Assembly (NCBI GenBank): GCA_010909165.1
Contig: MU008194.1
Span: 496,001 to 560,000, forward strand
DNA from: Anthoceros angustus
Taxonomy: Eukaryota > Plantae > Anthocerotophyta
Direction of reading: 5' to 3'
Length of the DNA: 64,000 nucleotides
In this document: positions 3,110 through 52,300 of the stretch, in pieces
Numbering within the stretch: the first letter of the stretch is position 1
Layout: the number at the start of each line of letters is the position of its first letter
Made by a program: the position numbers and the translations under genes
The notes under the pieces: generated by a model
Told to the model about the DNA's origin: nothing
Databases searched by the model: none
The model's input: the letters and a program-made list of their open reading frames with translations, nothing else

Positions 3110-4834
3110 TCACTTGCTGCTCCTGAAGTGGCGCAGGAAGGAGCTGTCGAAGTTGTGTCTCTCGCGGCCACGTCCCGGCAGGATAAGCGCTGCCCTCTCC
3201 CTGCGTTCCCTGATCTCTCTGATCTGCTCAACATCCACATTGAAAGCCGCAGCTGCCACTTCTTCGGGGAGATTACGGTAAACGGAAGTCCTCCCTGCAA
3301 GAGCCTCAACGAAAGGCCTGATGGAGCAAACAGTTATGGTTAGGCTGGCAATTGGTTAGGCTGCGTTGCTAAGATGTGAACTCTCTGAAGCATGAATGGG
3401 TTGGGCTGGCCGTGGAGCTTACTGGTCTGTGGTGTGGAAGGCAATCCATTCCAAGCCTTCATCTCCAGCCTGGACGCCGTGAGGGTAGAAGCGTGGGACC
3501 ACGTACGCATCACCTTCCTTGATTTCCTGGCTCTCAAGTCGCTCTCCATTGTTGCCAGCGATTTCCAGTCGTGCGGAACCTCTCAGGATGTGCACAATGG
3601 CATGGCCATTGAGTGCCCATTGAGGAGCCAGAATTGCGTTCTGATGACATAGGGTGAACATCTTATCAGACACCCTGCACAGGGCAGGAAAGACATTGCG
3701 GACTGCAACAGGAAGGAAGCAGGAGTCTGAACATACTGCGTCAAGACGACCGTATGATGCACCCAGGTTGACATTCTTGAGTATTGGGAGCTTAAACCGG
3801 TTGGCGCTGTTGTACAGACCAGCATTGCGAACTCGGACATCAGCTGAACCTTCCCGAATGTTGTAGACGAATTCGCCGTTGGCGATGTGTTCGCGCAAGT
3901 GGGTCTGGCTTGCCCGGTGTCCGCCCTGCACTGCGTTGCCGCGGCTCTCCTCGATTCTCACCTCACGCTCAGCCTGAACAATGCCCACGCCCTGCTGGCT
4001 GTTCAGGATCTCTTCCATCTGCCCCTCTTCCACGTCCCACGCGTCCGCCAAGAACTCCCTCCTGAACCCGTGCAGAATTCCGCGGAATTCCTGCTGCCCC
4101 GCCCGGCGCTGCTCGTGCTCGTGCTCGCTCTCGCGCTGGCCTCCACCGATCAAGAAGAAGCCCTGCACCGCACAAAGCCAAGGCCAGGCCGTTTTAAGCT
4201 CAAACAAACTCGCACATAATCGGATGCAGCTCAGGCTCAAACAAGTATCATCCATAGCATGCATCTCAGAGCCTCAAACTCAGTACCCTGGGCTCCCCAG
4301 CCTCTTGGTGGTACAATTCCGGGAGCAGCGAGCTCCGAATCCTTGGGCTTGCCGAGACGTCAGCGAGGAAAGGCCGCAATGTAACCACGTCGCACACGTC
4401 TCACACCAGACGACTCTCCCAAGGAGTAGCCGGTGAGAATCCCAGCATACCCCTCACCTGCATCACCAAGTTCACCATCAGCAAGGCCGGAAACAAAGAG
4501 CTGAGACCCTGGACACGTGGGATTTCTCTAAGTAGTTGAGCCAGGAAGACGTGCAGTCGTACGTCTGTATCCACCACTCACCCTCCTCGACGTAGCCGAT
4601 GTTGGCGGAGTCGGAGTACTTTGGCAGCACAAGGCCGCGCTCCCTGATGGTGATCCTGGCTGCGGCCACATTGGCGTCTCTCAAAGACCGGATGTTGGAC
4701 CAAGCCTCGATTCTGCCTCCGTCAGTCCGCAGAATTTCCCGAGGCTCCTCCAGCTGCAGCTCGGTTCTCAGTCCCACCGCGGCGCACACGCAGGACAAGG
4801 CCAAAGCCAGGGCAAGCGCCCATTTCAGCCCCAT
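3110..4834 (-). pseudogene. 11S globulin/legumin-like bicupin storage protein gene, exon 2 disrupted by a micro-inversion
   Basis: Signal peptide MGLKWALALALALSC; DGGRIEAW, LVLPKYSDS, GILHGF, LPILKNVNLGA, ILAPQWALNGHAIVHILRGSARLEI, VVPRFYP, LAGRTSVY. In-frame TGA at 4362-4360 arises from the inverted segment 4301-4368. Confidence 0.8.
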
Positions 4835-5014
4835 TGCGAACGAGTTCATCAACAATACGTCAATGACGCTGCACGTTCTTTGCAAGCTGCCGTCACAGAC
4901 TGAGCTACTCCGATGCTTGATGGGTGCTATTCCAACCCCCTGCTTAAGTACTGGGAGACTGGCACAACGGATATGGCAAACATGCCCCAACTGCCAGTTC
5001 AACATGGCACTGGA

Positions 5015-5191
5015 ACGTGGGGCCTTACAGGATTCGCGGCTTCCCAATGTCACACTCGAGCCAGGTGTCTTGGCGCCACACTTGTTCCTAGTTCAGTTCC
5101 ACTGGTTCAGAAAACGCTGAACGAACTGCCCTCATGCAGACTCTCGTTCACCTTATAGCAAGCAGGCAGCTCCATCGGCTGGCATCATGCA
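5015..5191. promoter_or_regulatory. Possible RY (CATGCA x2) and ABRE-core (ACGTGG) elements in the divergent legumin/RLK intergenic region
   Basis: ACGTGG at 5015-5020; CATGCA at 5133-5138 and 5186-5191. RY plus ABRE is the classic ABI3-type storage-protein module, but hexamers also occur by chance. Confidence 0.3.
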
Positions 5192-5573
5192 CCTGCAAAC
5201 AAATCCAACACCATGTCCAGTGTGCTCTGAGACAGGGAGAAGCTCTGGTAGGAAGGAGTGCGAGGTCAGGACCGGATCAGCGGACGGTTGAAGAAAAGAC
5301 AAAACTGGGGACAGTTAGGCCGTTGCCTGTAACCTGTCAGCTGACAAGTGACAAGTGAACGACCCCGAGCATGTAGACGAAGTAACCTTACTTTAGCTGG
5401 AGGCCAACTATAGCCCCAACGCCTCGTGGGTTCACGTCGCACAGCGGAGAAAACGTCGCACGAAGGAAGTCCGACCCTCCACGAACCCGGCCCCTCCCAA
5501 CAGGTTCACGACCGAGTGCAACTACAGGAAATGCAATGCGTTTCCAGCAAGAGGTTGAAGTGGACTTGCAGGT

Positions 5574-8419
5574 ATGGCGGATGGAAGCCGGTGGCCATGC
5601 GCTTTCTTGTGCTGCGTGGCTTTGATCCTGGCCTGCTTTCCGCCCGCCCATGGCCAGGAAGCAGGTCGAGAGCCGACTACGTACGTGGTGGGCGATGAGG
5701 GAACCTGGTGGACATCTCCGGCCGCCAGCAATCTTGCTGCGACCTATTATCAGGATTGGGCGGACAAGCAGACTGTCTACGTCAACGACAGCCTCTGTAA
5801 GCTGGCTTGGAGCATCTGGTTGAAATCTGGTTCAGGACGGATGCCTTGATCCATCATCCTGTAACGAGCCCTCGATGGACTCTTTTGCGCAGATTTTTCC
5901 TACAACAACAGCCTGTACGATGTCACTTTTGTGTATACTCAGAAGGAGCTTTCCGCCTGCGATCCCTCCAATTTCTCCGCCTACGATGGGACCGGGCAGA
6001 GCTACTTCACATTCTATGACAGCTCGACGTTCTACGTGATGAGCTCAGGGGGGGCCACTGGCGTCAGTGCAGATTGCCAAGCTGGAATGAAGTTCCAAGT
6101 GCAGGTGCTCCCGCTTGATTCGTCCCCACCCGGAGCACCTCCCCCTGCTGCTGTCCCTCCGACAACAAGCGCTTCACCGCCCCCAGGTTCCTCACCTCCT
6201 GCTCGGGGCAGCCCTCCGCCCTCCAGCACATCGGGGTCTCCAACCCCGCCGCCCAGCAAGCAGTCGCCTCCTCCCCCCAGCAGCTCGGCTGGGGTTCCAC
6301 CAGCCGGAGGACTTTTGCTTCAGATTGAGATACCTTGGGAGCCACAGGCCAACGACACCAGTTTCTACCAGAACTACCTCAGCGACCAGCTCGAGAAAAA
6401 TGGGCTCACGTTTGTACCTGTGGGGTCTTCTCTTGGTACGTAGACAGACCTCAACGTTGGATGGCCGATTTGAGATAATATGTGTTCCAGCATAAGGCCT
6501 CCAGACGGATCTCACCCCTCACTTTTACATGTTCTGCAGTGTTCAAGTATATTTCTGGGAAGAACAATGTGCTTAGGGTCAATGGAACTGACTTCGACTC
6601 ATGCACCAAGCCAGATAAACCGATCTCTCAGAACAAGGACCCAGATATCCCTATCAAGCTCCCTGACGAGGGGCAGTACTACTTTATTGATGGGTTGAAG
6701 GATCATTGCTCTGCTGGGAACATGAAACTGTTTGTACAAGTTGGTTCGGGACAGGGTCCTTCTCCTTCCCCAACAGGTTTGAAGGCCGCTGCGTGATCTG
6801 CAGTGCTGCACCACTCTTTTAGCTCTAATTCAAGTGTGCGTGCAGTTCTAAGTGCTTGAATTTTTTGTTTTGCAGGTTCAGGCTCTGGCAGCACTGGGTC
6901 ATCATCCGGGACCAAGTTTCCTATCGTAGGTAGTGCCAACTACCTTCTTCTCATGTTGATTGCTCTCCTGGCTTCAGCAAAAAGCACTTGATAACAATCT
7001 GAAATTACGAGACTAACCATCCTTGTCTCTTCTTTCTGTTTTGCAGCTGTGGTGGCACCCTCAGTCCTGGTTGTCGCCGGGTTGCTGCTTCTTATTTGCT
7101 GTTGCAGGTGCTACCAATCGAAGGCCACGGGGAAATACATCACAGTGAACACAAACCTTTCGTATGTCCCTCCTGGGATGGTGAATACTGCACAGAACAC
7201 AGAGAAGCTTACCAATATTCTGGCTGGCAATAATGGACGCAGCATCTGCAAAATTTTCACCTTCCAGGAGCTGGAGCGGGCTACGGCTAAATTCTCTGCC
7301 AACAACGAAATCGGGAGTGGAGGATTTGGCACGGTTTATAAAGGCACCCTGGACGATGGTACGCAGGTTGCTATTAAGAGGACCAAACATGCAGGGGGAA
7401 ATGATGTAGAGCAGTTCATCAACGAGATGTCAATTCTTTCCCAAGTGAACAACCGAAATCTGGTTAAGCTGTTGGGCTGTTGCGTTGTCCTGGAAGTTCC
7501 CCTCCTGGTGTATGAATTCGTCTCCAACGGAACACTTGAGGAACACCTTTCGATGGCAAATCAGGGGTTCGCCACCAAGCTTGATTGGGCCAGCAGATTC
7601 AAGATCGCTATTCAAACAGCTGAGGCTCTGAAGTACTTGCATGTTCAGGCCACACCACCCATCTTCCACAGGGATGTGAAGACTGCCAACATTCTGCTGG
7701 ATGACAACTTCAACGCCAAGGTGGCCGACTTCGGCCTATCCAAACTCGTGGATGTGAAAGCTACCCATGTGTCGACAATCGTGAAGGGCACACCTGGGTA
7801 CCTGGATCCTGAGTACTTCCACAACTTTCAGCTTACCGATAAGACAGACGTGTACAGCTTTGGGGTTGTTCTGCTGGAACTGATAACCTCAAAACGGCCA
7901 ATAGATCTTTCCAAATCCGCAGGAGAGCAAAATCTCGCGGTCTGCTCAATACCCTTGATACGAACTGGCAGAGTTGAGGAGATCATCGACAAGCAGATGT
8001 GCTCAGAGATTACGGAGGAAGACTTTCGGGAGATCGAAGGTGTCGCTCAGGTGAGTTGAAACGAGACATTCCCGAAATCTGCAGACGCGAGAAATTGCAT
8101 ATCTGGCTTCTAACTGCTCAGGCACACTCATGCTGTTCAGGTTGCAGTAGCATGCCTGATTCCTGAGCGGGCCTCAAGACCAACCATGAGTGACGTTGTG
8201 GAGATGCTGCAAAGGATAAAGGGATCCAAGCTGAGGGCAGAGGAATTCTGCAACAGGGCAGAAGCCATTGAGAGGACACACAGTCCCCTGGACATTCCTT
8301 CTTACGCCCTAACTGACGGCTTCAGCTACTACTCCAGTGGCGGGAAAACAAGTGCCAGCTCCAGCAGCAGCTCAAGTGCAATCTCCATTAACAGCAGCAG
8401 TAACATGAGACCTCGATGA
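5574..8419 (+). CDS. Receptor-like kinase: signal peptide, phytocyanin domain, Pro/Ser-rich linker, second phytocyanin domain, TM, WAK/WAKL-type RD kinase
   Basis: Exons 5574-5796, 5893-6435, 6540-6776, 6876-6929, 7047-8050 and 8141-8419 splice in frame (four phase-1 introns, one phase-0, all GT-AG). Phytocyanin motifs YVVGD..W..YQDWA..VNDSL, C..GMKFQVQV and YYFIDG..HCSAGNMKL; kinase motifs GSGGFGTVYKG, VAIK, HRDVK, DFG, GTPGYLDPEY. Confidence 0.87.
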
Positions 8420-10028
8420 CAGTGTGCCATTGAGCACCTCTTCAAAGTCAAGAACGGTTTTGCCTAGGTATGTACTCCATACATAGATGCTTTGCACACA
8501 GTCCTGATCACCCAGCCTCCCGACGTTTATGGTTTCAGACTAGGTTAGACGGGGCCATTCCATGTGTGTTTCATACCTGGCTGGGAACTATATAACCGGC
8601 TACCAAAATGCATGTTGGGTCGCAGCCCAAGATGGCTGATGGTTGAGAACAGGATGCCTCCCGTTTCCCTCAGAGTAATGATTTTATTTACATTAATGAA
8701 CAGATAATTTCTTTATTTACTAGCTATGCGAATGCATCCACTGCAGGAAAGAAGCATTGTTGAGAGTTATCTGCCAGCAAGGTCCTCACTTACAAATCCA
8801 TAGCGCCAGATATGTAGGAGGTGATACTCCAGGAACACGTGAAAGCGTGAAAGAAGGATCTGTCATACAGATGACTCAGGCCGTGAAAGCGTGAAAGATA
8901 CTCCAGGAACACGTGAAAGCGTGAAAGAAGGATCTGTCATACAGATGACTCAGGCCGTGAAAGCGTGAAAGAACGATCTGTCATACAGATGACACATGCC
9001 GTGACGTGACCTCTGCATGCCTGTACGGACTTCTGCGTCAAACATGCTAGGATAATCGACGAGTAATGGCTTGTCATGCTGTTCAGGTTGCAGTAGCATG
9101 CCTGATTCCTGAGCGGGCCTCAAGACCAACCATGAGTGACGTTGTGGAGATGCTGCAAAGGATAAAGGGATCCAAGCTGAGGGCAGAGGAATTCTGCAAC
9201 AGGGCAGAAGCCATTGAGAGGACACACAGTCCCCTGACATTCCTTCTTACGCCCTAACTGACGGCTTCAGCTACTACTCCAGTGGCGGGAAAACAAGTGC
9301 CAGCTCCAGCAGCAGCTCAAGTGCAATCTCCATTAACAGCAGCAGTAACATGAGACCTCGATGACAGTGTGCCATTGAGCACCTCTTCAAAGTCAAGAAC
9401 GGTTTTGCCTAGGTATGTACTCCATACATAGATGCTTTGCACACAGTCCTGATCACCCAGCCTCCCGACGTTTATGGTTTCAGACTAGGTTAGACGGGGC
9501 CATTCCATGTGTGTTTCATACCTGGCTGGGAACTATATAACCGGCTACCAAAATGCATGTTGGGTCGCAGCCCAAGATGGCTGATGGTTGAGAACAGGAT
9601 GCCTCCCGTTTCCCTCAGAGTAATGATTTTATTTACATTAATGAACAGATAATTTCTTTATTTACTAGCTATGCGAATGCATCCACTGCAGGAAAGAAGC
9701 ATTGTTGAGAGTTATCTGCCAGCAAGGTCCTCACTTACAAATCCATAGCGCCAGATATGTAGGAGGTGATACTCCAGGAACACGTGAAAGCGTGAAAGAA
9801 GGATCTGTCATACAGATGACTCAGGCCGTGAAAGCGTGAAAGATACTCCAGGAACACGTGAAAGCGTGAAAGAAGGATCTGTCATACAGATGACTCAGGC
9901 CGTGAAAGCGTGAAAGAACGATCTGTCATACAGATGACACATGCCGTGACGTGACCTCTGCATGCCTGTACGGACTTCTGCGTCAAACATGCTAGGATAA
10001 TCGACGAGTAATGGCTTGTCATGCTGTT
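8128..10028 (+). repeat. Near-identical tandem duplication (about 946 bp) of the RLK last exon and 3' flank
   Basis: Units 8128-9073 and 9074-10018; 10-bp TCATGCTGTT at 8128, 9074 and 10019; a 74-bp internal tandem repeat in each unit; copy 2 has a 1-nt deletion in the exon. Confidence 0.95.
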
Positions 10029-22367: not shown

Positions 22368-23215
22368 ATGTCCCGGGTAGGATTCCCGCTGCTGGTCCTC
22401 GCCATTGCTCTTTGTTGTGTGTGTTGTGTCTCGGGAGCTGGTTCTGAGATCACGAGCAATTGGTACTTGGTGGGAGGAGGGCAACTCTGGACCGTCAATG
22501 TTCCTGTGCCCAAAACTTACTTCCAGGATTGGGCTGACCAGTACAAGTTCTTCGTGAATGACTCGATCTGTAAGTGTTTTGGTTACTCGCCGTCCATGAA
22601 TACCTGTTGGCTACATTTGGCATCGTCTCCTAGTATTGCTCCAGACACACCTACGGGACGATACTGATGGCATTCCAAGGGTTTGTAATTGCATGGCAGT
22701 TTTCGTTCCTGCTAAGGGCTCAAGCGCTAAGGGACCCATTCAAGTCAGCCAAACCAATTATGGAAGCTGCACAGCTCTCAACATAGAAACAGGCAATTCC
22801 GTGTATGTTAACAATCTCGGGCTCTACCGAGCGGATTTCGTGTCGACGGGTAACACCTACTACATTGACAAAGATTCTGCGAGTTGCCAAGCAGGGTTGA
22901 AGTTTCAGGTGAACGTTCTGGCAGCTTCTGCACGGAAGAATGGCCTCCTCTTCAATGCTGCCGGCTCTGTCCACAACTATCTTCCTGCATTTGGTAAGTT
23001 ATCTGGAGTGGAAGGCTCTTGTAACTTGGTTCATTCTGTAAGGTTCATTCTTACTTGGAAAGACCAAGGAGGATGTCTGTTGCCACCAACATACTCACTT
23101 GAAAGTTGAGAGGAACGGTAAAGCATCTCATCAGGAGTTGTGCTGTGGTGCAGGGGCAGGTATGGCCGCCTTCGCTTCAATGGTCCTTCTAAATGCCTGG
23201 AACTTTGCGATATGA
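22368..23215 (+). CDS. Small secreted, probably GPI-anchored phytocyanin/ENODL-like protein (copy A), 3 exons
   Basis: Signal peptide; YLVGG..W..TYFQDWADQYKFFVNDSI; GNTYYID...SCQAGLKFQVNV; hydrophobic tail GAGMAAFASMVLLNAWNFAI with stop at 23213-23215. Copper ligands absent. Confidence 0.85.
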
Positions 23216-25030
23216 GGGATTCCGAATCATAGCACTGACCAGTCTGTGTGCTTAACGTAGAGGAATGTAGTGATGGAAGTCCTTCACTTTCCTCACTTCA
23301 TACATGTAGTCTGTGGTCATGAGCAAATCTCACCTGTTGTCCATCGCATAATTCATGTAGTTTTCTCCCACATCACACGCCATGTGGCACATTTGCCTGT
23401 GTGAATCTTATACCTCGTTCCTGAAATATGTACGGATTGGCAGACGACCGCGGGAATGTTGCGCTCTGGCACTGCGTAAAGGTTCAATTTCAAGCATGCC
23501 CTGTTGCTCCGAGCACCCGCTGAGTACGCGTGTCTGTTTTCCTTCCACATGTGGTAGGAGGAAACACTTTGATATCTTCGCTTTGCATATCCTCAGTATT
23601 CCTGCGGCGTTTTTGCTAACCAGAGGCTTCTCCCTAACTCCTGACGATGTCCTCCAGCTGCATGGCACAAATCGGAAGTGGCTGCCAAGCAGCTTCTATA
23701 TTTGTGCATTGGGCTTCAGGCTTGTCCAGAAAGGCCTTACATGGCCAGTTTCCGAGGACTGGCATAAAAGGACACATGACAGACACGACTCCGACGCCTT
23801 CTGGGTACATATTATCTGTAAAGGTCAAGTCAGCCATATGACTGCAAGAGGTCAGCTAGGTAGGCTGTACTACTGCCACTGCCAGAAGCGATGAACATCA
23901 TTCCTCCTCGCCCGTTGTTACAACGATCTCCATTGAAAACGGTGCGCGCGGTTGACCTAGTAGATGCTGAAAGACGTATTTAATCTGACCACTCGTATTG
24001 TAATGGGTGGTTTCTGCAATATATTACTACTTTTGGAAAATTTTTGTTTTATTTTTTAGAGTAATTTTCTAATTTAACTGTACTTGTTTACTTTGCAAGC
24101 TAATTGCATTTTTGCGATGAATAGTTGTAAATTGCATTGCAAGTTGCAATTCTCCAACTTTAAAGCATGATCGGATACCTATCAAAGTTGTCAGGCTATT
24201 TGAGGCGGATCTCCGTTTGTACTAAGTGCCGACAAGCGTGCCGGCACGACGGCCGCACTGTCGCTCTGGCGCGTATACTGGAGGACCGAGTCACTCAAGA
24301 ATCCTTGGGATTTGCTCGCTTTGAAGCAAAGCAATGAAGGAAGATGGCTTGAAGCAGGGCTCATCATGCTGCTCATGTCAACTTGTCAACTTGCCCGAGA
24401 CGGTGCCCTGATGGCGGCCTTCAAGGCGTTTCAAGATGGCTGGGGGAGTGAGAAAGCATGCACTACATATATCATATCCATGCTCATGTGGATGTCAGGG
24501 TGGCGGGGCCCTCTGCGTTTGCTTTGGTTGCAACGCTTCGCTTTGGTTGCAACGCTTCGTGGATGTGATCGGATACCTGTAAAAGGTTACAAAGGTATCG
24601 TCAGAAGCTAAGGCTGGCAAAGGTCAGAGGCTAATAAGGCTGGCAAAGGTGTCGGCACGACGGCCGGATTGACGCCCTGCTGTCACAACACTGAAGGACT
24701 TTGAGGAGTCTCACATTATCCTTGGATCTCACGCTCGCTTTGAAGCAAAGCAAAGAAGGAAGTAGCCGGTGGGAACCAGCGGTCATGCGGCTCATGTCGA
24801 CTTCCCCAACACCTATTACAATGGGGTGAGACCAAGTCCCCCTCGCCCTCGGCTTCGCGGCTTGCGTCCTTGGAGCTGATTCTGGTTTAATCTTTACCCA
24901 AGTGTATGCTCCGGGAGCACACTATTACAAAACACTGTCTTGAGACACATATTAAGACGCCCGAAAGACAATGGGCGGTGCCTTAAGACGTGCTCCCTGA
25001 CATCGGAACACGCCTTTGTAGTGTCTTTTC

Positions 25031-25850
25031 GAGGCACGTTTCCAGCTTCGATGAGCAGTCTCTCAGCCCGGCAAATACTCGACCTCAGGGAAACCAACGT
25101 AGAGGGATCCATTCCTGAAGGGTTTGCGAAGTTGTCATAGCTCAAGGAGCTTGATATCTCGTCTGCCCGGCTGAACGGAACGATCCCAAGCAATCTGCTG
25201 GAAAATATGAATTGTTGCTGGAGAGGTTCATTCTCCAAGAAAGCCAGTTGGAAGGTACTGAAACATCTCCCTTACCTGTTCTGATGTCAAGTTTATTCTG
25301 CACCTTCCAAACTTTGCATGCGTGGATGCGGAGTCCTAATGCAACACCTTGTCATGTGAACCGCAATGCCAGGCCCAATTCCAGAGAGCACATGGAACTC
25401 AACCAAGCTAAAGACCTTGGGCTTACGAGCAAATGCCTTGTTTGGTCCTATACCAACCAGTTTGGGCAATTGCAAAGATTCGTTCTCTTAGACTTTCAAG
25501 AGAACCAGCTTTGGGGAAGCATTCCCATGGAGCTTCAGCAGCTTGTGGGTCTGCGCGTGTTGAACCTCAGAAGAAACAATCTACTACAGGCACTTCTGCT
25601 CTTCACTGATGCCATTCCAAGGTGAGAGTTTTACTGGCCTAAAGGGTTTGCAAAATGCAACGGTAGATTCGGATACGGAAAAGACTTCTTTGCATGGAGA
25701 CGTCTATTTTCCTTTCAATCCGGAGGCACTTGGTTATCTCCTCAAGGCAAACACAGTATTTGATGTGTCATCTAACCATCTAGTGGGCTCCATCCCACAC
25801 GAAATTGGCGGTCACTATGGTTTGAGAGCGCTCACCTCTCCCACAATGAG
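25031..25850 (+). pseudogene. LRR receptor-like protein fragment (plant extracellular LRRs plus island and C-terminal LRRs)
   Basis: LDLRETNVEGSIPEGF, LDFQENQLWGSIP, FDVSSNHLVGSIPHEIG; stops and frameshifts; 5' end overlaps in homology with 31750-31864. Confidence 0.8.
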
Positions 25851-26391
25851 CTTATTTACATTAATTAACAGATACTTTATTTATTTACTTGTATGCAAAT
25901 GCATCCTCCCCAGGAAAGAAGCATCGTCGAGAGTTCTCTGCCAGCAAGTTTCTGACGTCTGTTCCATTCTGCCATGGCAATGCAAAATTTACAAATCCAT
26001 AACGCCAGCTATGTACGGCGTGATACTTAGGAACATGTGAAGAAGGATCTCTCCACCGTCCACAGACCGCGAGCTCCGCGTTCCTGCACCGACTTTTGCG
26101 TCAAATATGCTATGATAATCGGCGAGTAAAGGCTCGTGTTATAGATTATTATTAAATCCCAAGTTTGCGAGCCCGACGCGATTGTCACCTGGTGAGGGCA
26201 AGGAGCCAGAGCCAAAGACTGCACGTGACGCGGGTGTTATCTGGATTGAGAAACGCAGGGAGCCAAAGCCAGAGCCAGAGCCAGAGGCGAAGGAAGGGTG
26301 GGTAGGACTCTGCTGGAAGGGTCATTTGTAGAGGCGGTCCTTCGTCTTGCAAGCCAGTCGCAGTGCATCGATGCACTGTGAGAACTGGAAA

Positions 26392-27228
26392 ATGTCCCGG
26401 ATAGGATGCCCGCTGCTGGTCCTCGCCATTGCTCTTTGTGTGTGCTGTGTCTCGGGAGCAGGTTCTGCGATCACGAGCAATGGGTACGTGGTGGGAGGAG
26501 GGCAACTTTGGACCGTCAATGATCCTGTGCCCAAAACTTACTTCCAGGATTGGGCCGACCAGTACAAGTTCTTCGTGAATGACTCGCTATGTAAGCGTTT
26601 GGATTATTCGCCGTTCATGAATACCAGTTGACATGTGGTATCGTCTCCTATTATTGCTCCAGACACACCCGTAGGTGTGATACTGATGGAATTCCAAGGG
26701 TTTGCAACTGCATGGCAGTTTTTGTTCTTGCTCAGGGCTCAAGCGCTAAGGGACCCATTCAAGTCAGCCAAACTAATTATGGAAGCTGCACAGCTCTCAG
26801 CATAGACACCGGCAATGCCGTGTTTGTTGACAATCTCGGCGCCTATGAAGCAGATCTCGTGTCGACGGGGAACACCTACTACATCGACCAAGATTCTGCG
26901 AGTTGCGAGGGGGGGTTGAAGTTTCAGGTGAACGTTCTGGCAGCTTCTGCACGGAAGAATGGCGTCGGCAATGCTGCTGGCTCTGTCCACAACTCTCTTC
27001 CTGCATTTGGTAAGTTATTTGAAGTGGAAGGCTCTTATAACTTGGTTCATTCTGTAAGGTTCACTCTTACTTGGAAAGACCAAGGAGGATGTCTGTTGCC
27101 ACCGACATACTCACTTGGAACTTCGGAACGGTGAATCATGTGATGAGGAGTTGTGCTTTGGTGCAGGTGCAGGTATGGCCGCCTTCACTTCAATGGTCAT
27201 CCTAAATGCCTTGAACTTCGCGATATGA
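26392..27228 (+). CDS. Small GPI-type phytocyanin/ENODL-like protein (copy B), 3 exons
   Basis: Paralog of 22368-23215 with the same exon structure and hydrophobic tail; stop at 27226-27228. Confidence 0.85.
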
Positions 27229-36510: not shown

Positions 36511-39500
36511 GGTGGTTGAACACAAAACATGTGGTATCCCCTATTGCACCGATCACAAAGAAGCATTACATCATCATCATCAGTACGTCCACAAACCTGA
36601 CACTCCAAGTCTTTGGGTGGACGCCACATTGTAGGCCGTAGTTGAGGGTCCAAATTGGGTAAGTGGCATGGTGCGCAGTTCTTGAGGTGATCCTTCCATC
36701 TTCGCCATCGATCCTTGAGCTCAAGCACTCCATCTTTGCCTACTCGCACGACCCGCAAGATGACTCTGGTGGATACCTCCAAGGTGTTGCGCTTCCGGCG
36801 TGTAGACATAATCTCCAACTTCGAACTTGCGCACCTTGGGTTTCCATGTCCCTCCTCGTGTGTAAGCATAGCGCAGTTGATCCCTGTGTTGCGCTATGGC
36901 AAGGTTCTCCATTGCCATGGGCATGATCCGTTTGAAAAGCTCGCCTTTCCGGTCTCGTAGGCAATCATCCGCATTGCGCCAATCCACTGGTGCTTGTAGC
37001 CTTGCTTGCCTCACGTTTGGCAAAAATGGTTGTCGCCCATACAACAAGTAGTATGGTGAAAAATTGCTCAAGGCTGCTTGATTGCTCACCCTGTACCCTA
37101 GCACTAGGTATGGCATCCCTTCATCCCATGTCTTCGGGTCATTTGTGAGACAATACTTGCGCAAGGCCCGCTTGAAGGTCTGCACCAAGCGTTCAGCAAG
37201 TCCATCGGCTTGAGGATGATCTCTCGACGTACGTCGATGATCAATCAAGCTCCTGTCAAGCAAGTCTTGAAATTCCCCACGGAATTCTTTGCCCTGGTCA
37301 GTGAGAACCTCTGCACATGCTCCATATCGACTAAGAACGGAAGCCAAGAACGCCTTACTGGTAAGCCGAGAGTCACGCTTGGGTAAGATGGCAACCTCGC
37401 ACCACTTGCTGAAATGCTCCACCATTAGCATGACATGCTTGTTTCCAGTACGCGTCTCTGGCATGTCTGGCATGAGATCCACACTCCACCTGTAGAAGAG
37501 TCCTCGGATCGGCAGAGAGTGAAGCACAACATCATTGGCTGTGAACCTTGCCTTCACTCGATCGCACTCTACATTCTGCGACCAGCCTTTCCACATCTCC
37601 ATACATCCTTGCCCAAAAGTGTGTGGGCTGAGCATCAGAGGTGCGCTTAGCACCAAAATGCCCTAAGCCTTCATGCACTGGTGATGAGTCTCACCCGATC
37701 CTCCGGCTTGGGTACAATTCTATCTCCATGAGAATCACGGACATACATTATGTCCTCCTTCCAATAGTACCGAGCCACCTTCTCGTAGCTTGGCCCGCTC
37801 GAGATGAAAGCCCTTGTGGCAATTCCCCAGACCTTAGGAAGGTCACCGCTATTGCATCCGCCCAGATGTCCCTGACGGACTCTGCATACAAAGCGATGAG
37901 TGGAGGCATCTTGACATCCTCATGCGCATGGCCAACATGGTATCTGGACTACTCTCCCCACCGGTTGCTCGTCATCTGAATCTTGCCTGGCCCCTGTAGT
38001 GTCTTCGTTACGAGGTAGAGGATTCCTTGACAACCCATCAGGATTAGAGTGAACTCTACCTGCTCGGTGTTCGATGACAAAGTCATACTCCTGGAGAATG
38101 AGAGCCCACCTCGCCAGCTTTCCTGTAAGCTTGGCGTTCGTCATCAACCAGTGCAAGGGTTGATGGTCGGTGATTAGTCGAAATTGATGTCCAAACAAGT
38201 ACGGACGAAAGTGTCCGACTGCCCACACTGCTGCAAGACATTCTCCTTCATAGGCAGAGTAGTTGGACTCCGCCTGGTTGTTGCTCCGACTGGCATAGGC
38301 AATGACATGTTCCTCTTCCTTGTCATTGATCTGCGCCAAGATCGCCTATGCCGTACTTGCTCCAATCGTAAAGTACGAACGGCCATCAAGTTTGGATGAC
38401 CAAGAATTGGCGAGCTCATGAGTCTACCCTTCAACTCCATGAAAGCGACTCCTCCTCTTGAGTCCAACGCCAAGTCACCAACTTCTTCAACAAGTCATTC
38501 AATGGCGCGCAATCCTGCTCATCCGGAATGAACTTCCTGTAGTAACCGCCAAACCCAAGAATGCCCTCAACTTGAGATGTCGTTTGGCACAGGAATGCGC
38601 GATTGCCTCCACCTTGGTGGCATGCGGCGAGATCCGTCAGCGTGATCCAATGACCCAAGTACAACACCTTATCCTCTCCAAATCGACACTTCCTGGATGG
38701 GCCTTCAACCCACAAGCAGCCCTAGCAAAGGCGCTCGAAGATGTTGTAGATGCTCCTCAAAGGTATTGCTGAAGATGATGACGTCATCAATGTAGCACTT
38801 GGCGAAATGCAAGTCCTTGAGCTCATTGTCCATGTACCTTTGAACTGCGTTGGCGATGTCTTCAACCAAATGGCATGTAATTCCACTCGTACAAGCAATC
38901 TCCCAACGCCGTTTCTTCTTGTCTTCTTGGCGATCTCTACTTGGTGAAACCCTAGCCTCAAGTCCAATGTTGAGAAGAACTTGGCGAGACCCAATGGTGT
39001 CGAAGATCTCTTGACCGTCGGCATGGGATAGTGGTCATGTGGGATTCGCTCGTTCAACGGCCGATAGTCACCACACATTCTCCTCTCCGTCCACAATCCA
39101 TTCTCATCCTTCTTTTCGGAAGCATCGCGCAGCTGCATCGCGAGTTAGATCGTCGAATCAGCCCTAGCTTGAGAAGCTCTTGGCATCGATTCTCAACCAA
39201 ATCCCATGGCCAACTCCCTCTGCGGAACCTTTGGTTCATCCGTGGTCGATTCTATGTGGAACTTCCCTTTGGTGTACTTCCCCATCTCCGCAAGCGTGAA
39301 AGCAAACACATGTCGCGATGCCTCCAACAACTCCTTTAGCCGACGCTGATTGCTCTTCAACTCGATTCCTGTTAACCACTCATGTGGCTGTGGCTCAGAT
39401 GGCTTGCACGCTTCCTCTACGTGCTCGCTCTCCTTGCCCTCCAAACTCGCCTTCTCCTGTTGAGATGCGAGTGCTGGAATGTCCTTCACCCACCGAACCC

Positions 39501-49311: not shown

Positions 49312-52300
49312 TAAAGGAATACATGTGCTAGTTATTGATTAGGGTTTGGGTTATTTAGTCAAGTTAAGCTCTTAGCATTATATATGTCTTTTCATTAGGG
49401 TTACGTCATTTGGATAAGACACGTTGATTCATAAGTCTCTTTAGTTGTCTTTTCATACAACACATAAGTTTTATGTATGTTCTTGACACAATGTAATTAT
49501 TATATATGTTTAATTGATCCGTATCTGCCTAAATTACGTTATGGTATCAGAGCATTAGATGCAGATCGCATTCTAGTGAATGCACATTGTAAAATGCATT
49601 GAAAAAGATGCATTTGCATATAGTTTCTGTTGTTTTTGATTTAGAAAAATGCTTTCTTGATCAAGAAAATAGAAACATAAAGAAAGTGCTTTGTGTTGCT
49701 TTATTTCTATAGATGCTCTTATAATTTCTAGCAGATTAGGGGAGTAATCCTAGCGCATCTCCTCTGATTTGCTACCCTAGCAAAATCAGATGAAGTGCAC
49801 TAGGACAACTACCTGATCTGCAGGTAGATTATTAGAGGCATATCTATAAAATCAAAAATGTTGAAACAGACTTTCTAGCAACACAAAAATTTGGCCCCAT
49901 GAATGGCCAATCGAGTGGATTGGCGGCCTCGCCCTGCTGAGCGGATTCTGCCACAGAATCGCCGCAGGGGGCTGGTTGCTGGTGGACAGGCACCTTGGAA
50001 CTTCGTGGCTGAGCAACTCACTGGACACGTTGCAGACTGGACAGCACGAGTACAAAACGGGCCTGTTGACGCAGTGGAAATAAGAGATTCCTTCACCAAC
50101 TTGATTGGATCCCTCTTCCCAGACCAGCGCCAAGGTGCCCTACCACAAAGAAACTACAATCAGAGAGGTTTTCTAACAACACATGCTTCCCATACACCTA
50201 GTGTTGATAAGCTAATAAACAGGATTGAGGGACATAGACAACACGTCGATAGACGTTTCAATAGCATCTCACAGAGGCTAATTGCAGTGACTGTTGATCT
50301 GCATGATCCGATAGAAAAGATAGAACATGTGGATTTCAAATTACTAACCTTGTTGAAGCCCACCTTGCTTGCTAACCCTGCACATAGGGGGGTAGCTTGT
50401 AAGCACGCTAAGAAAACAAGTAGAATCCACACATTCAACAGTCCAAACTCGTGCCGCTCCTATGCAACATACGCTTACAATAGGTGGCAAATTAGAGACC
50501 AGAAAATTGGAAACATTGCACAGCAGCAGAGGTCACTGGATGCACCTGTAGAAGACAGGTTGCCCAACTTTGTTGCTGATTGTGTATGCCAGAAGTGTTA
50601 CCTTTGATGAAAGTCGCACTTGGGCATCAGTGGGAGCTGTTGAGGATCATGTCCTCAATGAAGATGAAGACACAACAAGATTTGTTGATTCACAATTTGA
50701 TCCAACAGATCACGGAACTCAGCCTGTTCAACCTGAGGACGTTGCTCCTGCAGGTGGGGATGACATAGCAGATTTTGAGTTCGTGGACATAGATGAGGCA
50801 GGTGTAGTTGAACAAGAACACGTACCTGTGCTGGAAGATCAAAATCAGCAAGTTTTACAGGAACAACATCCTCCTGAAGATGGAAACCCTGAACAGAATG
50901 CTGAAGCAGAACTGGAGTTGGATGATAATCCTATTGCCAACCAACCTGTACAAGATCCCCAGCCTGAAGAACCACCTAGACGATATCCATCTCGTCAAAG
51001 GCAACCTCCAGATTACTACCGTGCACCAGATTTTAGAGTTACTTCCTCACAAGTGGAGGTCAATGCTGCAACGTCCCTGGATCCTGTAGAACCACAATCC
51101 TACCAAGAGGCGTTGAGTAGACCTGACCACAAAGAGTGGGAGAAAGCAATACAATCAGAGTATGACTCCTTAATTGAGAACGGTACATGGGAGCTTGCAG
51201 AATTACCACCAGGCAGAAAATTGGTTTCTTGTAAGTGGGTTTTCAAACTCAAAGTAAAGGCAGATGGTACCTTCGATAGGTACAAGGCTCGCTTGGTCGC
51301 AAGGGGTTTCTCACAAGTCCCTGGATTGGACTATCTTGAAACTTTCTCCGTCACAAGCTTGCCACCCTTAGAACAATCCTTGCCATGTCCACACACTATG
51401 ATTATGAGTTGCAGATGTATGATGTTAAAACAGCTTTCCTACATGGAAAATTGGATACAGAGATATACATGCAGCAGCCTCCAGGATATGAGGTGAAAGG
51501 AAAAGAAAATCATGCTCTCAGGCTGATCAAGTGCTTGTATGGCCTGAAGCAATCAGCCATGAAATGGAACGCTGCCTTAGACACTGAATTGCTGGAATTA
51601 GGTTTCACAAAGAGCAAAATGTGATCTTTATATCTACATAAAGGAGATGTAATGTCATTGCTTAAATTATACGTGGATGACGATTACATCCGAATGACCA
51701 AGCTTTTATAACAAGCATCACAGATATGCTGGCCACTAAATTCAAGATGTCTAGCCTCGGCCCTTTACAGAGCTGCCTCGGATTCATATTCAAAGGAACA
51801 GACAGACTCGTGTGATGACATTGACTCAACCACGTTACCTTATGGACAGTGCTGAACAGTTGGGCCTCAAGGATGCAAAACCTGCTTCTACCCCTCTTCC
51901 CACAGGACTTAAGCTTAGTCGGAGTATGTCTCCTTCTACACAAGCAGAGAAGGATCAAATGTCAAAGATCCCCTACAGACAGGGAGTAGGTAAGCTAATA
52001 TATGCATCGAACACAATGAGGCTGGAGGTGGCCTATACACCGAGTGCCCTATCACAGTTCTTAGAAAATCCGGGTCCAGAACACTGGGCTAGCTTGAAAC
52101 GTGCGTTTAGGTACTTGAAGGGAACACCAACTTTAGGTATTTCCTACAGACAGCAGATTGAACAGACCCTCGACATAGAAGCTTACACCGACTACGGCGC
52201 CGAGATGTGGACACAAGGAAATCATCTACTGCTATGTGCTTTGTTTTGCGGAGGACCTATATGTTGGTCGAGCAAGAAACAGCCGACAATGGCACTCTCA

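Follow-up and report, generated by a model that had tools for sequence, protein, structure and literature searches.

Positions 5574–8419 (plus strand) of a 64,000-nucleotide stretch of the Anthoceros angustus genome (contig MU008194.1 of assembly GCA_010909165.1, forward-strand positions 496,001 to 560,000; the whole stretch is called the window here, and all coordinates below are its own) carry a gene model for a single-pass receptor kinase with two phytocyanin domains in its extracellular part. By reading and local joining, six exons unite in frame into 2340 nucleotides (nt), or 779 codons, with a single terminal stop, and they are separated by introns of 96, 104, 99, 117 and 90 nt, all five of which have GT..AG borders; introns 1–4 are of phase 1 and intron 5 is of phase 0. 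The encoded protein runs from a signal peptide through phytocyanin domain 1, a Pro/Ser linker, phytocyanin domain 2, a Gly/Ser stalk and a membrane helix to the kinase and a Ser-rich tail. Four studies contributed one public run each (X1, X5, X8 and X13 are among the labels), and in their contigs, aligned to positions 5400–8700, all five introns are skipped at exactly the predicted GT..AG borders, which bears out the six-exon, in-frame anatomy given in the original prediction, an earlier reading of this DNA.

All parts of the gene lie on the plus strand. Exon 1 (5574–5796) holds the start codon, the signal peptide (residues 1–27, 5574–5654, with cleavage likely after AHG) and the first third of domain 1; its GT donor sits at 5797, and the 5796-to-5893 joint is present in X1 and X5 contigs. 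Domain 1 (residues 34–148, 5673–6113), which is split by intron 1 (5797–5892), was placed with a local phytocyanin profile and by its identity to domain 1 of a fern protein. Its remainder lies on exon 2 (5893–6435, phase 1 to phase 1), together with the Pro/Ser-rich linker (residues 149–214, 6114–6311, placed by composition and motifs) and the first third of domain 2. Domain 2 (residues 215–324, 6312–6745) is split in turn by intron 2 (6436–6539) and was placed by the Pfam match of exon 3 and by solved phytocyanins. Exon 3 (6540–6776, again phase 1 to phase 1) supplies the last two thirds of this domain and the start of a Gly/Ser/Pro stalk, and the joints on its two sides (6435/6540 and 6776/6876) are found in contigs. 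The small exon 4 (6876–6929, 54 nt, phase 1 to phase 1) codes for the Gly/Ser stalk with FPIV at its end. On exon 5 (7047–8050, supported by Pfam and by the 6929/7047 joint in X1, X5 and X8) follow the membrane helix (residues 353–372, up to 7105, made of 20 hydrophobic residues and then basic ones), the juxtamembrane region and the bulk of the kinase domain (residues ~437–713, 7298–8218, placed by motifs, Pfam and a tree), which is split by intron 5 (8051–8140). Exon 6 (8141–8419, with the 8050/8141 joint in X1, X8 and X13) carries the end of the kinase, the Ser-rich C-terminal tail and the stop codon at 8417–8419.

The exon 4 to exon 5 junction at 6929/7047, which the original prediction had singled out for checking, is joined in contigs of X1, X5 and X8, all of them from relatives or paralogs. 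One X1 contig (record 1, 1438 nt) contains exons 1-2-3-4-5 and so both phytocyanin domains, the membrane helix and the N-lobe of the kinase in one piece, one X8 contig (record 18) contains exons 3-4-5-6, and an X1 contig with the exon 5/6 joint extends over the 3' untranslated region to 8661. Since the contigs are only 90–96% alike to the window, they come from relatives (species or strains) or from paralogs and not from this exact DNA. At the start of exon 4, two AG acceptors lie 6 nt apart (6870–6882): the X1 contigs use 6876, and a contig of X8, from another organism, begins exon 4 at 6882, without Gly-Ser; the exon 3/4 joints as listed for the contigs are 6773>6873 and 6773>6879. The start at 6882 could reflect an alternative (tandem) acceptor or a 6-nt genomic difference. 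A further joint, 7869>8184, was dismissed as a splice; it has TC..AA ends, short sides and high depth, and looks like contigs of other kinases.

The differences between the window and the relatives' contigs show how the sequence has changed. In the coding part, insertions and deletions add up to multiples of three: the linker has 4+5 nt and 3 nt, the tail 9 nt. Those past the stop codon are of 1 or 7 nt. Among the 40 substitutions listed, which are a partial and non-random sample of 121, 27 are synonymous, with 19 synonymous vs. 12 changing in the ectodomain and 8 vs. 1 from the membrane helix onwards. As far as sequence comparison goes, the whole-codon indels and mostly synonymous substitutions point to coding constraint. 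Taking the open frame, the intron borders and the contigs together, we are highly confident that the locus is a real, intact gene with a tandem phytocyanin–kinase architecture.

This gene might conceivably give two products. If intron 4 were retained, translation would run from exon 4 into the intron (6930–7046) for 20 codons, a tail resembling a glycosylphosphatidylinositol (GPI) signal with small residues and a hydrophobic run, before a stop, so that a lipid-anchored double-phytocyanin protein would be made beside the kinase form, and two small phytocyanin-like genes farther along the window (see below) do have a hydrophobic tail exon after a phase-1 intron. The hydrophobic run is, however, only ~12 residues long, without a spacer and with a polar end, and T-rich introns yield Leu-rich strings by chance. 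Intron 4 is also spliced out in every contig covering the site, and the equivalent read-through in a related gene on a contig of run SRR33208241 stops after two codons, which makes retention an improbable source of a second protein.

Returning to the kinase form, the extracellular domains can be assigned as follows. Exon 3 alone matches the Pfam family Cu_bind_like (PF02298) with 43.4 bits (cut-off 20.8) and an expectation value (E) of 3.5e-11, and domain 2 matches the solved plantacyanin 1f56 (2.9e-7) along with umecyanin, mavicyanin, cucumber basic protein and stellacyanin. Against the local phytocyanin profile, which consists of 59 single-domain phytocyanins taken from the matches of an exon-3 search, domain 2 scores 116 bits and domain 1 scores 41.9 bits over its whole length; because the profile was built from exon-3 matches, the score of domain 2 is inflated and that of domain 1 is the more independent of the two. 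Domain 1 also shares 52% identity with its counterpart in the Adiantum nelumboides fern protein discussed below, a domain that Pfam accepts as Cu_bind_like at 9.8e-10.

The set of type-1 copper ligands (His, Cys, His and an axial Met/Gln) is incomplete in both domains. In the profile alignment of domain 1, Tyr83 stands for the first His, Ser125 for Cys and Asp135 for the second His, with Met140 retained; in the alignment of domain 2 to plantacyanin 1f56, Asn264 stands for the first His and Asp306 for Cys, with His311 and Met317 retained. The mature ectodomain has exactly four cysteines, which fall in the conserved cysteine columns of the profile as the pairs Cys97/Cys136 and Cys277/Cys312. Every ligand replacement named in the original prediction is thus present in these alignments, next to the kept disulfide cysteines. 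The linker (residues 149–214) consists to 79% of Pro/Ser/Thr/Ala with SPP, SPPP and SPPPP motifs, and five N-glycosylation sequons occur in the ectodomain. As in early nodulin-like (ENODL) proteins, a copper-less phytocyanin domain is combined with a Pro/Ser/Thr/Ala-rich glycomodule region; in place of a C-terminal GPI anchor signal without a cytoplasmic domain, the spliced product runs on into the membrane helix and kinase.

These ligand positions bear directly on whether the protein could be a receptor that senses copper or another metal. The metaRLK preprint (bioRxiv 10.1101/2023.12.21.572927) proposes metal as the signal for Cu_bind_like ectodomains, and domain 2, with His311 and Met317 retained and Asp306 at the Cys position, retains part of a possible site. 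The Cys is gone from both domains, however, in the window protein as in its fern counterpart, and domain 1 is without three of the four ligands. A type-1 copper site requires a cysteine thiolate, and since this ligand is missing, metal sensing seems quite unlikely. The original prediction had instead suggested a non-copper ligand, and of this the non-copper role stands as a fair inference because the copper-binding Cys is missing from both domains of both proteins; judged from these residues, the ectodomain likely has a non-copper binding function.

On the cytoplasmic side, exon 5 matches Pfam Pkinase (9.6e-44) and PK_Tyr_Ser-Thr (3.4e-45), and the domain contains the Gly loop GSGGFG, the VAIK lysine, HRD, DFG and GTPGYLDPEY. 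As every catalytic motif is present, it is predicted to be a catalytically complete kinase of the arginine-aspartate (RD) type. A word search with the kinase exon, which covered proteins of 184–585 residues, gave WAK4, WAKL14, WAKL20, LRK10L and the "RLK-Pelle-WAK family" as the closest named relatives at 51–60% identity; the 706-residue fern counterpart was missed by this search because of that length range. The nearest solved kinases are those of BRI1, FERONIA, SymRK and BAK1. With complete motifs and WAK/WAKL proteins as nearest named relatives, the intact WAK-type RD kinase that had been predicted agrees with what we find. Kinases of the WAKL14/WAKL20 type also share the single-pass layout. 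WAK proper differs in having a GUB_WAK_bind/EGF ectodomain, and no ectodomain exon of the window gene has a Pfam match to a GUB_WAK_bind or EGF domain at E up to 1.

The position of the kinase was examined in a quick maximum likelihood tree of 37 kinase domains, comprising word-search matches of 184–585 residues and two fern proteins, without an outgroup from other classes of receptor-like kinase. In this tree the window protein groups with two proteins of the fern genus Adiantum (Shimodaira–Hasegawa-like approximate likelihood ratio test, SH-aLRT, 94) and then with a liverwort protein (99). This window clade, a moss clade and the WAKL20-type clade, whose members have GUB_WAK ectodomains, form a three-way polytomy, with an LRK10L pair just outside. 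Constraining all phytocyanin-type kinases to group together costs 1.27 log-likelihood units (approximately unbiased, AU, test p = 0.449), so that a single ancient fusion behind the window, fern, liverwort and moss proteins is allowed by the sequences.

The fern proteins in this tree came from searches with the ectodomain. An exhaustive search with exon 3 returned 240 proteins at E up to 0.001, and among the longer matches a single one is a receptor kinase, the hypothetical protein L7F22_044979 of Adiantum nelumboides (MCO5591003.1, 706 residues), in which Pfam finds Cu_bind_like twice plus Pkinase. By local pairwise alignment, residues 32–727 of the window protein are collinear with it from end to end (~700 aligned residues, 51% identity, 685 bits), and this collinear stretch includes the two domains with their linker, the FPIVAVV junction, the membrane helix and the kinase. 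A counterpart in Adiantum capillus-veneris lies within GOP47_0021510, a gene model merged with an unrelated N-terminal part. A word search with the fern ectodomain, in a collection without the window's own protein, found only these two Adiantum proteins. The long exon-3 matches without a kinase, which were examined and set aside, are either seed-plant proteins with several phytocyanin domains or unrelated proteins of prokaryotes, and none of them is a receptor kinase; a class of phytocyanin-receptor kinases was not met among the seed-plant matches of the searches made.

Both Adiantum proteins share with the window protein a signal peptide, domain 1, a Pro-rich linker, domain 2, a stalk ending in FPIV, a membrane helix and a WAK-type kinase, with up to 67% identity in the kinase domain for that of A. 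capillus-veneris. They also have Ser at the copper-Cys position of domain 1 and Asp at that of domain 2, as the window protein has; they differ in retaining the first His in both domains and in having lost the second His of domain 2, and their genes span 24–33 kilobases (kb) vs. 2.8 kb in the window. Both fern proteins are uncharacterised. When the domains of the window and fern (A. nelumboides) proteins are paired one by one, identity is 52% for domain 1 and 46% for domain 2, and the two domains within one protein show hardly any likeness to each other (E about 1.7). Because each domain pairs with its own fern counterpart, the tandem layout is old and does not stem from a recent internal duplication, and because Ser and Asp are identical at the copper-Cys positions, the loss of copper predates the split between the window and fern lineages.

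Proteins with one such domain are found in other non-seed plants. In the moss Ceratodon purpureus, M758_5G193500 and KC19_VG136400 combine Cu_bind_like with a kinase; like the window protein they have a copper-less ectodomain on a single-pass WAK-type kinase, and their domain corresponds in type to domain 1 (31% identity, E = 2e-9). They differ in having one annotated domain and in that their kinases form a clade of their own; by the AU test given above, this clade and the window clade may or may not go back to one origin. The liverwort protein, from Calypogeia fissa (P0003), has an ectodomain that Pfam leaves blank and that scores 45 bits against the local phytocyanin profile. Here too the ectodomain is copper-less and phytocyanin-like and is attached to a single-pass kinase of WAK type; this kinase is sister to those of the window and fern proteins, and the domain, the only one annotated, corresponds in type to domain 2 (25% identity, E = 1e-4). 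From these comparisons, the gene very probably belongs to an old family shared with Adiantum ferns and, in one-domain form, with a liverwort and mosses. The description of the receptor as lineage-specific is not upheld in view of the collinear Adiantum counterpart and of the liverwort and moss proteins. A related phytocyanin-kinase gene is also present on a very GC-rich genomic contig, the Logan contig of SRR33208241 mentioned above (positions 1–1383). Identity with the window gene is 65% in exon 3 and 46% from the membrane helix into the kinase; the layout of exon 3, small exon 4 and exon 5 is kept, and a long Ser/Thr-rich insert follows the membrane helix.

The window itself contains two further genes of phytocyanin type, at 22368–23215 (+) and 26392–27228 (+). 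These are tandem three-exon genes ~4 kb apart. The product of each begins with a signal peptide and has a single copper-less phytocyanin-like domain, with 32% identity to domain 1, and a hydrophobic tail resembling a GPI signal, for which there is a separate exon. Both of their introns are of phase 1, the first at the place of intron 1 of the kinase gene and the second before the tail exon. Such a structure is in keeping with an ectodomain that came from GPI-type phytocyanin genes through a swap of the final exon, which, in view of the fern counterpart, would have to be ancient.

A different history, in which a young, lineage-specific receptor arose recently when phase-1 exon shuffling brought a local phytocyanin gene together with a kinase exon of WAK type, would draw on the same features: introns 1–4 of the receptor kinase gene are all of phase 1, and the two small genes, 14–19 kb downstream, share the place and phase of intron 1 and a phase-1 intron before the tail exon. 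Against it stand the collinearity with the Adiantum protein at 51% identity, the fact that the domains pair with those of the fern at 52% and 46% and with each other only at E of about 1.7, the low identity (32%) between the neighbouring small genes and domain 1, and the occurrence of the fusion in liverwort and moss proteins as well. We consider a recent origin highly unlikely, and since fern, liverwort and moss proteins share the fusion, any shuffling would predate the split of these lineages. The phase-1 exon shuffling that had been suggested for this gene therefore remains reasonable as an inference that fits the four phase-1 introns and the neighbouring genes, but, if it took place, as an ancient event rather than a recent one.

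Taken as a whole, the locus is best explained as an intact single-pass receptor kinase with two copper-less phytocyanin domains and a kinase of the WAK/WAKL branch, from an old family of non-seed plants, and we regard this complete account as probable. Several observations weigh against it to some degree. Among the public runs examined there was no read or contig at least 99% identical at the locus, so that transcription of the gene itself is presumed, and the type of the runs (RNA) was guessed, the absence of introns in the contigs arguing for complementary DNA. An exon-by-exon Pfam scan gave no match for domain 1 (exons 1 and 2), as is understandable because intron 1 cuts the domain. Domain 2, with His311, Met317 and Asp306 at the Cys position, could possibly form some other metal site, to judge from these residues. 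We also found no functional study of phytocyanin-receptor kinases in the literature (ligand, localisation or kinase activity). Finally, the 3' structure of the gene is slightly clouded by a near-perfect 946-nt tandem copy: positions 8128–9073, from the final 13 nt of intron 5 through exon 6 into the 3' region, are repeated at 9074–10019. A single 1-nt deletion, at the place of 8290, distinguishes the two copies and would shift the frame of the second exon-6 copy, and their borders have a 10-nt microhomology (TCATGCTGTT); the repeat may be genuine, as a recent duplication, or an artefact of assembly. That the gene is an artefact of wrongly joined adjacent phytocyanin and kinase genes, or a decaying paralog, as the lack of an identical contig and the duplicated 3' end with its 1-nt deletion might suggest, is hard to reconcile with single contigs of relatives that cross exons 1–5 and exons 3–6, an open frame of 779 codons with all kinase motifs, mostly synonymous substitutions with coding indels of whole codons, and a collinear fern protein, and we give it very little credence.

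Other features of the window were noted as well. Within each 946-nt copy lies an array of 74-nt repeats (8823–8972 and 9768–9917). Just upstream of the receptor kinase gene, at 3419–5053 (−), two long reading frames match Pfam Cupin_1; they probably belong, as exons, to a cupin gene of the vicilin or germin type in divergent orientation to the kinase gene. Between the small phytocyanin-like genes, at 24900–26040 (+), strings resembling leucine-rich repeats occur, which may be a fragment of a leucine-rich-repeat gene. Matches to an integrase core and to an RVT_2 reverse transcriptase at 36721–37656 (−) and 50570–51496 (+) are retroelement remains.

Receptor kinases with a phytocyanin ectodomain have been catalogued before in bulk surveys. 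The metaRLK preprint (bioRxiv 10.1101/2023.12.21.572927) names Cu_bind_like as a previously unreported ectodomain of receptor kinases, and a table in RLPredictiOme (PMC9603095) has a row "Plastocyanin-like-RLK" with 12 entries. The window protein has the domain combination expected of such kinases, with a signal peptide, Cu_bind_like, a single membrane helix and a kinase on one chain; the survey entries differ from the present case in being list items, in which we met no species breakdown, tandem form, loss of copper ligands or experiments. Neither metaRLK 2.0 nor a fern immune-receptor paper mentions the combination of phytocyanin and receptor kinase, and in a census of arabinogalactan proteins (AGPs) phytocyanin-like and kinase-like chimeric AGPs are handled as separate groups, with the combination undiscussed. 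The statement that this is not a standard class of receptor-like kinase accordingly holds insofar as standard classifications leave the class out, but the class is already listed in the two surveys. The window gene is a further member of an old, catalogued and functionally unstudied class.

ENODL-type proteins are needed for pollen tube reception. For ENODL14 and ENODL15 of Arabidopsis, which bind a receptor kinase ectodomain, a direct interaction with FERONIA is on record (review PMC6726743, citing Hou et al. 2016). Angiosperm ENODLs such as these resemble the window protein in the copper-less phytocyanin fold, the disulfide, the Pro/Ser-rich glycosylated regions and the cell-surface location. 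They differ in being GPI-anchored and without a kinase, whereas the window protein has two domains fused to a membrane helix and to a kinase of WAK type, not CrRLK1L type. By analogy, the closest functional resemblance seems to be to ENODL and FERONIA acting in trans, here with module and kinase in one chain. It may be envisioned that the cupredoxin-fold domains, being without redox copper, act as a binding module at the interface of wall and membrane, with a wall glycan, a protein or a peptide as the partner of the ectodomain. The Pro/Ser linker, which is probably O-glycosylated (on hydroxyproline), would anchor the receptor into the wall, and ligand-dependent association would turn on the kinase.

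The gene documents a class of receptor-kinase ectodomain that standard classifications omit, and as a natural fusion of ENODL-type domains with a kinase, conserved from bryophytes to ferns, it offers a handle on what ENODL-type phytocyanins bind. One could go further and read it as a "Rosetta stone", in which copper-less ENODL-type domains would have served early land-plant receptor kinases as modules for binding a ligand or partner, and the GPI-anchored ENODLs that act in trans with FERONIA-type kinases in seed plants would be the split form of the same system. We hold this to be a rather doubtful proposition. If it were true, what ENODL domains bind would come to light by studying these genes in a hornwort, moss or liverwort that can be transformed.

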